DNA of 64,000 nt from Selaginella moellendorffii. Its lineage: Eukaryota > Plantae > Lycopodiophyta. Shown here piece after piece: positions 1,352-57,177 of the stretch (position 1 is its first letter; each line of letters begins with the position of its first letter). Location of the stretch: contig NW_003314269.1 in assembly GCF_000143415.4 (NCBI RefSeq), positions 2,425,544-2,489,543 on the forward strand, written 5' to 3'. The notes under the pieces were generated by a model. That model worked only from the letters and a program-made list of their open reading frames with translations. It was not told the origin of the DNA and did not search any database. Position numbers and translations under genes: made by a program.

Positions 1352-3154
1352 ATGGCGCTCTCCCTGGCGGCGCTGGCTCGACGGACCTCGGCTGCCACTC
1401 TCGATGCGGCGATTCTCAGGTTCTTATCCTCCTCCGCTGCTAGGTTCTCCACTCCATCGCCGCCCCGGATTTCCAAGACTCTACCCAATCTCGACGCCAT
1501 CGCTGCCGCATTGCGAAGCAGCCAGCACGGGGAGGTGCTGACGCACATCGGCGGACGCCTCACGCTCTTCCTCTTCCTCAAGGTGATTCGCAGCCTCAGG
1601 GACGCCGATGCGTGGGTGATCTTCTTCGACTGGGCTGGCGCACAGCAGGGATTCCTCCACAAGCCAGTCACTTGCAATGCGCTGCTCGATTTGCTCGAGA
1701 GAGCTCGCCGGAGCGAGCAGATTGTGGTGGTCTTTGGGAGGATCTTCTCGCAGGACTGCAAGCCCAACGCTCTCAGCTACTGCTACCTGGTGAAAGCCCT
1801 GTGTAGGACGGGAAAGATCGACAAGGCGTGTAGCACCATAGCCGAGATGGCCAGGGAGAAGCTGGTCCCGGATGTTTTCACGTACAACGTGGTGATAGAC
1901 ACACTCTGCAAAGCACGGAGGATCTCTCGAGCGATCGAGTTCTTCGAGACAATGCCCGAGCCGGATGTGGTCACCTACAACACGCTGCTTGGTGGGCTCT
2001 GCAAGAACGGCAGAGTGGCTCAAGCGTGCTCGTTGTTTGGAAGCATGGAGGGCGCTGGTATCACCCCAAGCGATGTGACTTACACCACTCTCATCGACGT
2101 CTTCTGCAAGATGTGCCAGTTTGAGACCGCCTACGGCCTCCTCCAGCTGATGGCGTCGAGGAAGTGCTCGCCGACCGTCTACTCGTACTGCTCGATCATC
2201 AACGGGCTGTGCAAGAACAGGAAGGTGGATCAAGCGTATCAGCTCTTCGAGGAGATGAAGCTAGCGGGTTGCAAGCCGGACAGAGTGACTTACAACACTC
2301 TGATCCACGGGCTTTGCGTCAAGCAGAGGCTCCACGAAGCGAAGGACCTCCTGACGGTCATGGTGGAGAATAGCTTCCAGCCGGACAAGATCACTTTCAC
2401 GGCACTCATCGAGGGCCTTTGCACGACGGATCGGATTAAGGAAGCCTTCGTGCTGTTCCAAGGCATGGCAAAGCAGGGATGCGCTCCGGACCTCGTCACT
2501 CACACCGTCCTCGTCTCCAAGCTGTGCATCCGGCGGAAGCTCCGCCCGGCCTTGAGTGTGGTACGCAACTATCCGGCCTGTCCCGAGGCAGTGATTCTTT
2601 ACACTCCCATTTTCAGGGAACTCGGGAGGAGGAGAGGCTTTGACCGTGCGGCAAGGCTGCTACAGAAGATGGCCAGGAGAGGCGTCGCTCCAAACGTTGT
2701 GACTTACACCGCGTTCTTCAAGGGGCTGGGCGACTGGAAAGAGGGAATGCGAGCGTACCGGGAGTTTAGGCGGATGCTCGAGCAGGGAATAGAGCCGGAC
2801 ATGGTGGCTTACAACGTTCTGGTGGACGGGTTTTGCAAGGCGAATAGGCTGGACATGGCAGAAAAGATGGTGAGGTACATGGATCAGAGTGGACTCCCTC
2901 CAAACATCGTCACTTACAACACGCTCGTCGGCCACCACTGTAGGAAGGGGAAGGTGGAGGCCATTGGCGAGCTCCTCCACACCATGGTTAGCAGGGGCCG
3001 GCAGCCCGACGTTGCGACTTGGAGCACGCTGGTGGCGGGGCTCTTCAGGGTCGGGCAAGTGGACGCGGCGTATAGCTTTCTTAACTTGGCCATGTCCCAG
3101 GGCTACACTCGGGAAGCCTTGAGGTTCAAGGCGGCAACAAAGTTCAAGTGGTGA
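1352..3154 (+). CDS. P-class pentatricopeptide repeat protein, 600 aa, intronless, probably organelle-targeted
   Basis: Tandem ~35-aa motifs (PDVVTYNTLLGGLCKNGRVAQA, PDRVTYNTLIHGLC, PNIVTYNTLVGHHC). Ala/Arg/Ser-rich N-terminus. No E/DYW domain. Confidence 0.93.
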   Translation: MALSLAALARRTSAATLDAAILRFLSSSAARFSTPSPPRISKTLPNLDAIAAALRSSQHGEVLTHIGGRLTLFLFLKVIRSLRDADAWVIFFDWAGAQQGFLHKPVTCNALLDLLERARRSEQIVVVFGRIFSQDCKPNALSYCYLVKALCRTGKIDKACSTIAEMAREKLVPDVFTYNVVIDTLCKARRISRAIEFFETMPEPDVVTYNTLLGGLCKNGRVAQACSLFGSMEGAGITPSDVTYTTLIDVFCKMCQFETAYGLLQLMASRKCSPTVYSYCSIINGLCKNRKVDQAYQLFEEMKLAGCKPDRVTYNTLIHGLCVKQRLHEAKDLLTVMVENSFQPDKITFTALIEGLCTTDRIKEAFVLFQGMAKQGCAPDLVTHTVLVSKLCIRRKLRPALSVVRNYPACPEAVILYTPIFRELGRRRGFDRAARLLQKMARRGVAPNVVTYTAFFKGLGDWKEGMRAYREFRRMLEQGIEPDMVAYNVLVDGFCKANRLDMAEKMVRYMDQSGLPPNIVTYNTLVGHHCRKGKVEAIGELLHTMVSRGRQPDVATWSTLVAGLFRVGQVDAAYSFLNLAMSQGYTREALRFKAATKFKW

Positions 3155-3277: not shown

Positions 3278-3711
3278 ACCTCTGAGGCTCAAGAACTACT
3301 GCCACTAGCGAGCTAGTGTCACCTTCGGGATCAGCTACTCACTGCCGAGCAATCTCGCGCGAAAGAAGTGTTTGACAGCATGATCCAATACGTGCTGCGA
3401 ATATCAACAAAAACATCAATGAACTGAGAAGTCACATACCATGAACACAGTCCCGGCCAGGGCTTCCCGCGGGTTTAAAGTCTTGCTCTGTAACTCAATA
3501 TGGAGATCAGTTCAAGAATCACATACCTTTTTTGTTCATCTACAACAAAAACAGCAAAGTCGCCTCCACCCGCAGCAACAAGCCTGTTGCCTTGTATTTG
3601 TAGTTCTTTTCCTGAAACGTTCTTCATTAGCTTGACAACACTCGATGAGATCGAGAATAAAAGCTTACTCTAGAAAGCCGTCCGTATGGCTTTCTCACAA
3701 CATACTTTCCA
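3278..3711 (+). repeat. Local dispersed duplication, copy A (degenerate, with deletions)
   Basis: Colinear with 5343-5956. Shared blocks include acctctgaggctcaagaacta, cagtcccggccagggcttcc, tcttgctctgtaactcaatatggagatcagttca and agaaagccgtccgtatggctttctcacaa. Confidence 0.9.
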
Positions 3712-3884
3712 GCGTTCAGTTCAGCTATCAACTTGAAGTAGTGTTCTAAGAGATCTGGTTGATCGGGCATGCAAGACTCATCGACATCCCTCAGATGAAA
3801 ATGTTGGCCTTCCTGTCAGACCTTGGAAGACCTTCCTGCAGTGGAGCTTGATAAACTGGAACACTGAAGCAACTGCAATTACCT

Positions 3885-5015
3885 GTGAGTATAGAGAACA
3901 TTCACAGCCTTATAGATATATCCGGTTCTCATGATGAATGGCACCGATGGATGTGCCCTCTGCAGTGTGGTAAGCTTTTGTACAATCTCCAAGTGGGAAT
4001 GAGTGATCTCGTTCAAGCTCTTCGACCATTTTTTCTTCCGTTTTCGAGAATAGAAGTCGTAGAGGTTTCTCAACGTATTGTTTCTCATCATTTGTCCAAG
4101 CTAGAGTTTTGGAAAGAATAAGGAGTTTCTAATCGGACATGTACGCAACACTGGCTGCAACACAATCAACCCGCAAGGGAGAACACAAAAGTGCCAAAAG
4201 GCTCAGGCTTGACAGGAGAACGGTATTGGGAACGGGAACGAGAACGAGACCTGTGTCAAGAAGACTCTCCTGGGAGAAAAGATCGAGCATACTCAACTAT
4301 GACTTGAATCAGCAACCCATCCAGATCCCGAACTCGAATGCAACTTCCTGCGGTCGTGCAAATTCCACAAAACCGTAGCTTCCCTTCACATAGACGCTAA
4401 GAATCCTGCAAGGACAAGTGTATGATGGGTACCTTCTTTGCAACGTGATGATACTTTAATTCCTCAACTGAGGAAGAGGAAGTATTTTTATGCTACCAAA
4501 CTCCATGCAGAGCTGAGATTACAAATGTTCCTAGCGAGACACAACTACATCGGTGTTTCTAAGTTGCTGTGGGTGGATAATTTGGTAGAAAGGATTAGCG
4601 GTTTGGCTATCCAAATTCTAGTTGGAGGGTTTAGAACTAGTGAGATGACGCCAGATCAAAATGTGCTAGTTATGCTTGGTATTTCCCCATATAAATGAGA
4701 CTTGGTCCTTTTCTAGCATCCTGGGACAAGTAACGGGTTTGATCGAGCCAGATCAAACCAGAAAACTCTTATCTTTTCACAGTGGACATCGACGCTTCTG
4801 ATCGAGTAGAAGCACTGGCCAGCCAGGAGTAAGCCAACCATTCATAATATAACTAAGTAATATGCCTGAAGTGATTGGAAGTAGGCTCGTTTGAAATTAG
4901 AGCTTCCATGATTGCGCGCAATGGATTCAGGAGTTGTTATGCCCCATGGCTCAGATTAAAAGGGCCGTGGCGCTCGCACCCCATGACCGATACAGCCTCC
5001 TTACATAGCATCTCA
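3885..5015 (+). pseudogene. Fragmented OTT_1508-like zinc-dependent nucleic-acid deaminase relic
   Basis: HAELRLQMFLARHNYIGVSKL at 4504-4566, followed by out-of-frame TGC TGT (CC). A putative C-terminal part, HDCAQWIQELL...HDRYSLLT*HL, lies at ~4907-5015. Confidence 0.55.
4200..4405 (-). pseudogene. SR-protein (RRM + RS domain) gene fragment, frameshifted
   Basis: After a TGCAG acceptor the minus strand reads ILSVYVKGSYGFVEFARPQEVA (RNP1-like). After a frameshift it reads VRDLDGLLIQVIVEYAR, then RSRSRSQYRSP. Confidence 0.65.
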
Positions 5016-5053
5016 GTTCACGATCTGTGCATCCAACTCTGCAAATCATCGGG

Positions 5054-5245
5054 GACTGCGACTACGGCTCCGGCTATGTTGGCGTCTTCGAGAACGGTCC
5101 CAACTGCGACTACGGCTCCGGCTATGTCGGCGTCCTCGAGAACGGTCCCGACTGAGACTTCGGCTCCGGCTATGGCGGCGTCTTCGAGAACGGTCCCGAC
5201 TGAGACTTCGGCTCCGGCTATGCCAGCCTCTTCGAGAGCGGTCTG
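5054..5245 (+). repeat. Tandem minisatellite, 4 x 48 bp
   Basis: Units start at 5054, 5102, 5150 and 5198. Consensus gactg(c/a)gact(a/t)cggctccggctatg..ggcgtcttcgagaacggtccc. Confidence 0.95.
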
Positions 5246-5342
5246 TACTCCGACTATGACTTCCGCTATGATCCTGGCTCCGGCCCGGCTACGATAAAAA
5301 TAATTGAAAGATCAAAACAAAAGCAACCATTCACCTCATCGT

Positions 5343-5956
5343 ACCTCTGAGGCTCAAGAACTATTGCTACTAGCGAGCTAGCGTCACCTTCAGGAGCAGC
5401 TACCAACTGCCGAGCAATCTCGAGCGAAGGAAGTGCCATTACATTTTCGACAGCCTTGCCACGATGAGCCAAAACGAGAAACTGCTTTCCGTCCAATATG
5501 TGCTGCAGCGCAAGGAGAATATCAACCAAAAGATCAATGAACTGAAGTCAGATACCATATGTACAGTCCCGGCCAGGGCTTCCAGCGGGTTTAGAATCTT
5601 GCTCTGTAACTCAATATGGAGATCAGTTCATCATCGAGAGCCGAGAATTACGTACCTTTCCTTCATCTACAACAAAAACAGCAAAGTTGCCTTCACCCGC
5701 AGCAAGAAGCCGTATAGCTACCATCGTAGTTGTGTAGTTTGCCAGCCACAACCGGAACTAGTACAACGGGAACAATCAAGAAAGGACCAGCCAAAACAGT
5801 TGGATTACCTTAGATTTGAATACTTCAATGGGCCGCTCCCCATCAATATAAGGTTCATCTTCTTCCCATCTATCGGCAAAGGGTTTTGGCTTAGTATGTT
5901 AGCATTACTTGGAGAAAGCCGTCCGTATGGCTTTCTCACAAAAGCCATACTTTCCA
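5343..5956 (+). repeat. Local dispersed duplication, copy B; overlaps the 209-aa ORF 5464-6093 of unknown function
   Basis: Colinear with 3278-3711 but longer. The ORF MSQNEKLLSVQYVLQRKENINQKINELKSD... is open here and broken in copy A. Confidence 0.85.
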
Positions 5957-52912: not shown

Positions 52913-55900
52913 ATGAGCTGCAGCAAAGTTGGATTGATCTTGCTTCAGGGAGTCACTGCCTTTGATGGGAGGAGAGGGTTCAACACTTGGTCCGAGAAAA
53001 TGATGCGTGTGCTGCAGATGGAAGAACTCTGGGAAATCGTTTCACCACCAACAATCGCTGCAGATGCTCGTACGCGGCGAGCCCCTGCTGCGTTGGGAGC
53101 TTCAACTTCAGTGGAAGGAGAAGTCATGGATGAAGAGGCAATTCATGCCTCTGTTATAGCAGCTCGACAACAGCTTGATCTAGGGGAACAAGCTGCGCTG
53201 GAGAAGAAGAAATCTCGAGCAAAAGGATTGATTCTTTCTAAGCTTGCAGATGCCCTTATGATGCGTTTGCGTCATAAGTGTGCTTGTGAGATCTAGGCTC
53301 ATCTCCACAACAAGTATGCTGTTCTTTCCCTCTCCAAGATTAGCATGGTCGAGACTTGCATTCATGAGACCCGTTTTCATCCATACGAGAACTTTGAAGA
53401 GTTCCTCGCCAAGATGCAAGATCTGTGGATGGAGCTTGAAGGCAGTCCAGCAGCGTTCAACGAAAGCAAGAAAGTTCTGGCACTTTGCGAGGCCATGCAA
53501 GATTCTTCTTTTAGTTCTTTCGTCCCTACCGTTCGCATGATGTCACTCAACTTTGAACAAGCTGAGCAAACTTTACGCTCGGAGCTGGCTGCGAGAGGTT
53601 TGATTGTGGACTTTGATCAGAGGCCTTCCCATGTTTTGATCTCACAGTCTACATCAAATGCTTCTGCATCAAGCAATCAGTCAGGGACTGATTCAGCTCT
53701 GTGGGCTGGAAATCATCAAGGCAGAGGAGGCCGCGGAAGAGGAGGACGAGGCAAAGGTCGCGGGTTTAGGGGAAATCCGCAACAGCAGCAGAATTCAGGG
53801 AATTCTGGTAAAGAAGCAGTAGTTCGGGATTGTTTTGTGGGCAAGAACAAACAGGAATGCTGGACCTGTGGGATGCCAGGGCACTACTCCAAGGATTGCC
53901 CAGTTGCAGCTTGGCTGCAACGCATGAACATAGGGCTCGCAGCAAATGCTCAGGAAGGGGAAACATAGGAACTTGCGGCATCATCTGAGGTAGCAGTTCC
54001 AAACGTTTCTGAAAAACTGACCATCGATTCAGGTTCAGAGAGACACCTGATGCAAAGCGGGTCGAACTTTGTGCAGTTGCGTGCTGCAAAAGGGAAGTGC
54101 ATTCGTGTGGGAGATGGAAGCATTTTACCTGTTCGTGCAACTGGGGATGTGCGAGTTCCACTGGGAAGAAAGTCTCTGCTCTTGAAGAATGTGTGGTATG
54201 TTCCAAAGATAGTGAAGAATCTGGTTTCTGTAGCCAGGCTTACGGATGAAGGTCTGGATGTGAATTTCTCCAAACATCAATGTCAAGTTCTTGCAAATGG
54301 CCGTCCATTACTACATTTTCCCAGATGTGGTAACCTATTTGAGAAGGAGATATCTTCTGGAGAAAAATCGAATGCTCCTGAGATATGCATGACTGCAGAT
54401 AGTTCTCTCTGGCATTCTAGACTTGCACATGCCAATCCCCCTCTCATCAGGCGTATGCAGAAGCAGGAGCTTGTGGATGGCTTCAATGACCATGTTCTTC
54501 AAAGTTTAGCAAAATGTCACACTTGCATTCTTGGCAAGCAAACCCGTCGTACTTTCAAACCTGCTGTGACCAGAAGCACTCATCCCTTGCAGCTCATTCA
54601 CTCAGATGTTTGTGGACCCATGCGACTGTTTGCTCAGAATGGCACGAAGTATTTTGTGACATTTACAGATGATTTCTCTAGGCACACGGACATCTTCTTT
54701 CTTTGTCACAAAGATGAAGTCTTTAGCAAATTCAAGCAATTCGTAGTAGAAGCCGAAGTGAAAACTGGTCAGAGGGTTGGTTGTTTACGTACTGATTCAG
54801 GAGGGGAATACGTCAACAAGTCCTTTCAGCAATTCTGTGCTGAACGAGGAATTCTTCATCAGCGCTCTTGCTCTCATACCCCTCAACAGAATGGAGTCTC
54901 TGAGCGCAAGAATAGGACAATCATGAACGCAGTTCGGTGCTTCCTTCAAGAATCAGGACTACCAAAATTCCTTTGGGCTGAAGCAGTTGGATCAGTTGTG
55001 CATGTTCAAAACCTTCTCCCTCATTCTCGCAATCCCAACAAGATCCCAGAAGAGCTTTGGACTGGTCAAAGACAATTGGTGGTGCATCTCAGGCGTTTTG
55101 GTTGTTTAAGCTTTGCAAAAAGGGTGGATGAGCATCTTGGCAAGTTGGAGAGCAGAAGCAAGTTGGCCTTTCTTGTTGGATACGATTCCAATTCAAAAGG
55201 ATATCGCCTGTACCAGCCTAGTAATCATCAAATTTTTGTAAGCACTGATGTTCGTTTTGATGAAGGAACACTCTACAAAGATCATGTTCAAGAAGAAGGA
55301 AGCTCAGATCAGAACATGAACTGGACTCCAGAAGAATGGAGTTGGGATGGTGTTGAAGACGGTGATGAAGATGACGATGATCTGACAATCATCTATCCCT
55401 CATCTCCTTTAGCAGATGATCATCCAACACCAGTCTCTGGATCTTTTCTTCCTGAAGAACAGGGCGATGCTACTCATCGTGCACGAACTGGAGAAGTCGA
55501 CAAGCTCACACATGATCTACCATTCAATGTGGAGAACTATGGGCGGACATCATCTGGACGATCAAGTAGAGCACCTCATCCCAAGCAATGGTCTTTGCAG
55601 CAACAGAAATAGCTTCTGAACCAGTCAACTTTGAGCAGGTGATTCAAGCTCCTGATGCAGATAAGTGGATTTCAGCAATGCAAGATGAGTTGAATTCTCT
55701 TGATGAGAACCAGACTTATGACTTGGTGGAAGCTCCTGAAGGACGTGAAGTTGTTGGATCACGCTGGGTGTTCAAGCTTCACAGAAATCCTAATGGATCG
55801 GTACAGCGTTACAAAGCAAGACTTGTTGCTCAAGGATATTCACAAGTTCTTGGAGTGGATTTTGATGAGACCTTCTCACCAATTGTGAAGCAGACAAGTA

Positions 55901-57177
55901 TCAGAATGCTTCTGGCTTTTACAGTGGAGTTTGGTTTGTGCGCACATCACATGGATGTAAAAACAGCCTTCCTTAATGGGAACTTGAAGGAGGAGATATT
56001 TATGTGGCAACCCCCAGGCTTTGAGCTTTTTGGATCACGGTGCTCCGAACTCATCTTCAAGCTTTGCAAGGCTCTTTATGGCCTTAAGCAGGCTTCCCGT
56101 CAATGGTATGAATGTTTGGATTCTTTTCTTATGGATCTCGGTATGCAGAGGTTGAACAGCGATGGAAATTTATATCTTCTTCAGCAGGGTGATCACTTTG
56201 TTGTGATAGCAGTTTATGTGGATGACTGTTTGATTGTCAGCAACAATCACACTATTTTGAAGGATGTGAAGATCAAGCTTATGAACAGGTTTGTGATGAA
56301 GGACTTAGGGGCTGTGCGGCAGCTGTTAGGGATGGAAGTTGACAGGGATGAAGCAGACAGGACAATCACCCTCACACAGTGCCAATATGTGAAGAAGCTT
56401 CTCAACCAGTTCAACATGACAAGTTGCAAATCCGTGGCTACACCAGTCGTCACTGGCATCAAGTTCACAAGCAAGATGGATGATTTATTTGATCAGCCCT
56501 CGGTCTATCGATCACTTGTTGGAGGACTACTCTACCTCGCCAACATGACTCGTCCCGACATCTCCTTTGCCGTTGGTCTCCTCAGCCGATACATGCAGTC
56601 TCCGAGTTGTTATCATTGGCAGATGGCGAAAAGAGTTTTGAGGTATTTGAAAGGAACAGCTGCTCATGGATTGGTTTACAAATGCTCAGGTCAATCCAAA
56701 CTTGTTCTTCAAGCTTACTGTGATGCAGATTGGGCTGGCAACTTGGATACACAACATTCAACCTCTGGAATTTGCTGCATAATTGCCGGTGCTCCGGTTT
56801 CATGGGGAAGCAAGAAGCAAATGACAGTTGCTCTTTCCAGTGCAGAAGCAGAATACGTAGCTGCCAGTACAGCAGCAAGGGAGATCATCTGGCTTCGTCG
56901 ATTACTTGGAGAACTCAATCAACAGCAATCAGATGCGACCATTCTGCATTGCGACAGCAGAAGTGCAATCGCCATGTCAAAGAATCCTGTGTTTCATGCT
57001 CATACGAAACATATAGACGTGCAGCATCACTTCATTCGCGAACATGTAGCAGCCGGAGATCTTCACCTGGAATACGTTCCTTCACAGTATCAGTTGGCAG
57101 ACCTTCTAACCAAGCCACTTTCGGAGCTCACATTCATCAAGCTGAGGAATCAACTTGGAGTGTCAAGCACACCCTGA
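52913..57177 (+). pseudogene. Copia gag-pol polyprotein, disrupted
   Basis: Zn knuckle CWTCGMPGHYSKDC, protease IDSGS, WHSRLAH...CHTC, integrase HSDVCGP/RTDSGGEY/NGVSERKN, RT YVDD, RNase H YCDADWA. TAG stops at 53294 and 53966; frameshift before ~55590. Confidence 0.95.

Follow-up and report, generated by a model that had tools for sequence, protein, structure and literature searches.

OTT_1508-like deaminases are bacterial toxins that have been acquired repeatedly by eukaryotes. In the deaminase fold, the histidine of an HAE motif and the two cysteines of a CxxC motif hold a zinc ion, and the glutamate of HAE shuttles a proton (PMC3239186); within the fold, the OTT_1508 clade is recognised by a GxxK motif that precedes CxxC (PMC3239186, Table 1). 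Furthermore, it has been reported that the lycophyte Selaginella moellendorffii hosts a member of this clade, SELMODRAFT_427619, which was described as "strongly divergent" (Iyer, Zhang, Rogozin, Aravind 2011; PMC3239186), and no mention of this gene was found in the other papers that were searched. The only eukaryotic OTT_1508-like members with a described function are the OLD deaminases of Neurospora crassa, which are responsible for antiviral A-to-I mRNA editing in the OLD-ZAO system (PMC12754623).

Here we describe a sequence in the S. moellendorffii genome, located in a window of 64,000 nucleotides (the whole stretch of DNA that was analysed), which is very probably what is left, in short and dead form, of a gene for an OTT_1508-like zinc deaminase (4459–4576; PF14441, Helix-4 division). 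The fragment is new as a dead member, whereas the family itself is already recorded for this species; SELMODRAFT_427619 shows that the Selaginella genome has contained the family, and this lends plausibility to a relic.

The locus and its neighbours

Gene calls were taken from the annotation of scaffold GL377573.1 in assembly GCA_000143415.2. This NCBI annotation contains no call between the PPR gene on the left and the 335-aa gene on the minus strand on the right (Table 1), and the segment 3885–5015 is therefore unannotated intergenic DNA. The fragment had originally been placed between two PPR loci, a setting that could not be confirmed: a single PPR locus (1352–3154) is detectable in the whole window, and the right-hand neighbour is an orphan in which no Pfam family was matched when the exons were scanned singly. 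The PPR neighbour is of the P type and is unrelated to the deaminase fragment; a cluster look-up of its protein gave no result.

Table 1. Coordinates of the relic, its motifs and its neighbours in the window
Feature	Position	Strand	Remarks
P-type PPR gene, 600 aa	1352..3154	+	left-hand neighbour of the relic; NCBI annotation
Partial, degenerate copy of a part of the orphan gene that contains exons	3278..3711	-	matches 5343-5956, 74-91% identity, indels
Stop-free frame of 90 codons with the deaminase-like core	4426..4695	+	reads ...YATKLHAELRLQMFLARHNYIGVSKL
OTT_1508-like deaminase core relic	4459..4566	+	end of helix 1/strand 2, helix 2 with HAE, strand 3 with GxxK
HAE of helix 2 (zinc-binding His, catalytic Glu)	4504..4512	+	corresponds in the alignment to HAE, invariant in 20 bacterial members
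YIGVSK, strand 3 with the GxxK motif before CxxC	4546..4563	+	string identical in PF14441 members
Break point	4564..4588	+	frame shift between 4564 and 4567; CCG at 4565-4573 in the next frame; stop at 4586-4588
HDCAQWIQELL...SLLT, then TAG	4907..5008	+	not supported as part of a deaminase
Orphan gene, 335 aa	5018..6763	-	right-hand neighbour of the relic; NCBI annotation

Between the PPR gene and the relic lies a degenerate copy of part of the orphan gene. Indels make the distance between this duplicate (3278–3711) and its source (5343–5956) drift from 2065 to 2127 nt, and the duplication stops there, with no homology to the orphan gene detected in 3712–5017. The surroundings of the relic are decaying as well, cf. 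this pseudogene fragment.

The last exon of the orphan gene contains four tandem units of 48 nt (5054–5293) that are 68–92% identical; their minus-strand product is a series of 16-residue IAGAEVSVGTVLEDA-like repeats at the C-terminus of the 335-aa protein. At a distance, the window also contains polyprotein ORFs of the Ty1/copia type (54050–57177, plus strand) with GAG-pre-integrase, integrase core, retroviral SH3-like and RVT_2 domains. For the fragment itself, neither terminal inverted repeats nor further copies were found within the window, and the sole Rfam match, to IS009, was far below the threshold.

The deaminase-like core and its break

The relic frame is preceded by a stop codon at 4423–4425, and past approximately position 4566 the in-frame remainder of 4426–4695 is unrelated sequence. 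Between these limits, HAE is found in the sequence context of the family (4504–4512), and the GxxK motif that has been described as a synapomorphy of the clade (PMC3239186, Table 1) is present as GVSK (4552–4563) inside YIGVSK. Immediately downstream the frame is lost: TGC TGT (4565–4570), in frame +1 relative to the relic, encodes two cysteines that are followed by GWIIW and by a stop codon (4586–4588), seven codons past the out-of-frame CC. The second zinc-binding cysteine of CxxC is missing at the break, and the relic frame contains no CxxC. All the peptides quoted in the original prediction, along with the out-of-frame TGC TGT, are located where it had placed them, and the strings that it gave as the family signature (HAE...YIGVSKxxCxxC and SKLCC) match real OTT_1508-like members. 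The data show that the core is homologous to the family and where the break is located.

A complete deaminase fold in a single ORF was not found, approximately 40 codons being recognisable; neither strand 1 nor the CxxC pair could be recognised, nor could the strand-4/helix-4 loop or any later part of the fold. An upstream extension of the relic through the stop at 4423 was considered and rejected, given that the piece that precedes this stop in the same frame adds nothing to the score of the family HMM. The codon-usage score of the relic ORF (0.025 per codon, within the top 11.5% of open segments) is indifferent, and a single-sequence AlphaFold2 model is all-helical, with a confidence (pLDDT 62) too low for the model to be of use.

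The HDCAQW piece had been proposed to supply the H/aromatic loop of the same deaminase. This piece (4907–5005) has no Pfam match, and neither does any other piece downstream of the break. An HMM of the C-terminal part of the family, in which the RG(T)HG...W.(L)P loop is located, gives no match in any frame of 4570–5300 and does not align to 4901–5005; likewise, the strand-4/helix-4 loop with its polar residue (usually H) and the aromatic-xx-P motif were not found downstream of the relic. The piece is located 10–110 nt beyond the stop codon (5018–5020) of the minus-strand neighbour and, judging from the position of this gene end, is probably the 3′ flank of that gene. The assignment of HDCAQW to a deaminase loop is not supported, and neither is the notion that insertions shattered a complete gene: the recognisable part of the fold amounts to about 40 codons, and because no further part of it can be discerned, what we observe is one short relic.

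These data also bear on the possibility that a deaminase gene with introns is alive but unannotated here and that the relic is part of it, with the CxxC motif and C-terminal exons, including the HDCAQW piece, located downstream. In favour of such a gene, the family exists in S. moellendorffii, and the CC (4565) and HDCAQW (4907) share a frame (both 2 modulo 3); nevertheless, we consider it highly improbable, given that no stop-free CxxC is present in any frame from 4540 to 5020, that a stop follows seven codons past the CC, that the downstream pieces have no profile support, that 4907–5005 adjoins the 3′ end of the minus-strand gene, and that the ORF corresponds to no called gene and to no recorded product.

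A different reading dispenses with the frameshift altogether. Residues 28–67 of the ORF, read in the unshifted frame (4510–4626), resemble repeat 2 of the ClpC N-domain, with which they have HNYIG...LL...G.A.Q.LV in common, so that the fragment might be a relic of a Clp_N repeat. A phmmer search against the PDB retrieved 13 ClpC/MecB N-domain chains (E 0.27–1.6, approximately 14.5 bits), and the alignment continues beyond the supposed frameshift. However, an E value of about 0.3 arises by chance for one query in four, Pfam does not report Clp_N even at E values up to 10, the N-terminal half of the ORF alone has no PDB match, and there is neither a repeat-1 partner upstream nor a Clp gene nearby. 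Moreover, independent support exists for the deaminase reading and none for Clp_N. We can therefore lend hardly any credence to a Clp_N origin and judge the resemblance of the two sequences to be a coincidence.

Profile scores, chance expectation and bacterial relatives

The Pfam profile PF14441 (OTT_1508_deam) matches the relic ORF with 12.5–13.7 bits (E 0.06–0.14) over model positions 1–30 of 64 and thus does not reach the gathering score of 27 bits; the short spacing between HAE and YIGVSK costs the alignment a deletion of 8 positions. When 149 stop-free segments were picked arbitrarily from the window as a control, approximately 20 unrelated Pfam matches were obtained at E 0.14 or better, and, except for two bHLH matches, these were absurd (e.g., polyomavirus coat protein, Trp leader peptide). 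Taken alone, the Pfam match of the relic is at noise level. When ten true members were cut at the residue at which the relic breaks, they yielded 12.9–27.6 bits or no match at all, and hence a half-domain cannot be expected to pass 27 bits; a score of 13.7 bits is what a real half-domain yields.

Sub-threshold spurious Pfam matches also occur on arbitrary intergenic frames nearby, namely HTH_5 (E 0.009; 3885–4121, plus strand) and BrxB (E 0.04; 3879–4091, minus strand), and illustrate the local noise level.

A phmmer search with the 90-aa ORF against 1.84 billion representative proteins returned nothing at E values up to 1e-3, which is weak evidence of absence, given that a match of 30–45 aa needs approximately 45 bits in a search of this size. 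No relative was found in a word search with the 86-aa ORF among proteins of 47–150 aa, and word searches that started from two of the bacterial members introduced below, L043 and L051 (110–820 aa), retrieved metagenomic members only and no plant protein. Within the limits of length and score of these searches, no intact plant paralog appeared among predicted proteins, and SELMODRAFT_427619 is itself absent from the results of the representative-protein search and of the L043 and L051 word searches. For the relic ORF, a direct search found no related loci in bacterial genomes, the exact-product look-up gave no recorded product, NCBIfam gave no match, and a protein-language-model atlas returned noise only.

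A more informative comparison was obtained from the family itself. A scan of a collection of bacterial and archaeal genomes with the back-translated YIGVSKxxCxxC motif yielded 50 loci, approximately 20 of which are long ORFs with an in-frame HAE 11–27 residues upstream; the ORFs come from Rickettsiales, Holosporaceae, Coxiellaceae, Legionellales, Acidobacteriota and others. All ten loci that were tested are PF14441 members (27.7–46 bits), and one of them is fused to an eCIS core domain; the locus L043:2023-3429 (minus strand) is from a metagenome-assembled genome (MAG) of Acidobacteriota. A family HMM built from such loci carries a bias in the columns of YIGVSK and C..C, on which they were selected, but because the loci were chosen solely by these columns, the remaining ones provide an independent test. 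In the unselected columns, the KLHAELRLQMFL segment of the relic fits the family pattern (V/L)HAE[LM][KRQ][LI]..[YF][LI]. Our own family HMM gives the relic 17.5–19.7 bits, compared with 6.5 for the next-best segment of the window. An HMM restricted to the upstream columns still gives the 40 residues before YIGVSK 9.6 bits (HMMER P 5e-5), a score that is reached by 5 of 120000 random 40-mers (P about 4e-5), and by this measure the relic ORF ranks first among the 1906 stop-free segments of the window. The proposal that the first piece derives from an OTT_1508-like, non-DYW deaminase is supported.

Several details of the sequence are in agreement with this assignment. In a tblastn comparison, the relic matches L048 with 32.3 bits. 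At the position of the out-of-frame CC of the relic, CC is present in 18 of 20 members, and the first of these cysteines is not a selected column. With our own, biased family HMM, a reading bridged with X across the break scores 30.3 bits, compared with 19.7 for the unbridged one, and in the subgroup of L051 (L051, L032, P0010 and others) the string is NYIGVSKLCCG, identical to that of the relic when bridged across frames. The spacing of 11 residues between HAE and YIGVSK is also found in true members (P0003, P0005, P0006 and P0007).

A subgroup of PF14441 proteins (P0012–P0023), relatives of L051 from metagenomes and Logan, has HAD in place of HAE, i.e., the catalytic Glu is replaced by Asp, and retains Y[VI]GVSKLCCGYCH and HRGTHGVCD. 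As far as can be read from these motifs, this subgroup may be an inactive branch of PF14441 or one with altered chemistry.

It is against this background that one has to weigh the possibility that there was never a deaminase gene at this site and that the open frame, with its HAE and YIGVSK strings, arose in intergenic DNA by accident. A Pfam score of just 12.5–13.7 bits against a cutoff of 27, with equal or better spurious matches for some 20 of the 149 control segments, would fit such an accident, as would the failure of the large protein search to return relatives and the lack of the second half of the domain. Furthermore, the loose pattern HAE-x(10,35)-[YFILVM][ILV]Gx[ST]K is expected approximately 9 times per genome. 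However, the relic matches exact strings of the family rather than the loose pattern, and the exact YIGVSK is expected just 0.0018 times per window, or about 7 times per genome; in addition, the upstream columns, which are independent of the selection, single out the relic with the probability and rank given above, and the CC in the adjacent frame occupies exactly the expected position. The joint chance expectation is approximately 3e-4 per genome, or 0.02 per scan of 250000 windows, with the CC not counted. A chance origin of the fragment is, in our estimate, quite improbable.

Beyond this locus, the methodological lesson is that subfamily evidence, if taken from columns that were not used for selection, can rescue a sub-threshold Pfam match that would otherwise pass for noise.

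Proposed origin of the relic and comparison with known systems

We propose the following scenario for the dead deaminase remnant. The ancestor would have been a complete gene for a zinc-dependent nucleic-acid deaminase, whether imported from bacteria or paralogous to the Selaginella member already reported, and most of this gene would subsequently have been lost through deletion and neutral decay. The part that survives in one frame comprises the run into helix 2, helix 2 itself with HAE, and strand 3 with YIGVSK, and the frame shifts exactly where helix 3 should provide the two zinc-binding cysteines. No functional protein can be made from the relic: it retains His and Glu, but it has no in-frame zinc cysteines, no substrate loop and little of the beta sheet, and can therefore neither fold nor act.

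A more far-reaching hypothesis is that a deaminase gene of the type found in intracellular bacteria (Rickettsiales-, Legionellales- or eCIS-type toxins) reached the lycophyte genome by horizontal transfer and left the fragment as its trace, and that its intact descendants function in an editing defence. We consider this unlikely; if it were true, intact copies elsewhere in Selaginella (e.g., SELMODRAFT_427619 or unannotated ones) would represent an uncharacterised system of nuclear mRNA or DNA editing in defence, comparable to OLD-ZAO. The dead remnant adds a data point for a formerly larger family, or for more than one arrival, in a lycophyte with a single reported and uncharacterised member, and its practical value is as a pointer to the question of whether plants possess an editing or defence deaminase that is not of the DYW type.

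According to its published description, SELMODRAFT_427619 has the species and the clade assignment in common with the relic.

Among the bacterial PF14441 toxins, those of a Legionellales MAG (L048), of Rickettsiales MAGs (L051, L032 and L041), of Holosporaceae (L039) and of Acidobacteriota (L043, the fusion to an eCIS core domain) have in common with the relic the (V/L)HAE[LM][KR]L segment, the exact YIGVSK and the SKL-CC-G string; in the L043 group, the spacing between HAE and YIGVSK is 11–12 residues, as in the relic. Unlike the relic, these toxins have all their parts, including CxxC, the loop RG(T)HG...W.(L)P and domains for delivery at the N-terminus. The plant fragment is limited to about 40 codons, is disrupted by a frame shift and a stop codon, and is located on a eukaryotic chromosome, outside any toxin-delivery context.

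The OLD proteins of N. crassa, likened here by description, belong to the same domain family and have the same HxE...CxxC centre. In contrast to the relic, which has neither a partner gene nor an intact domain, they are intact, expressed and paired with a ZAO gene.

Finally, the PPR-DYW deaminases are abundant in the S. moellendorffii genome. These enzymes of RNA editing in plant organelles are likewise zinc deaminases with an HxE...CxxC centre. They belong, however, to another clade (the C-terminal hairpin division), have no GxxK motif ahead of CxxC and invariably occur as fusions to PPR/E domains (PMC3239186).
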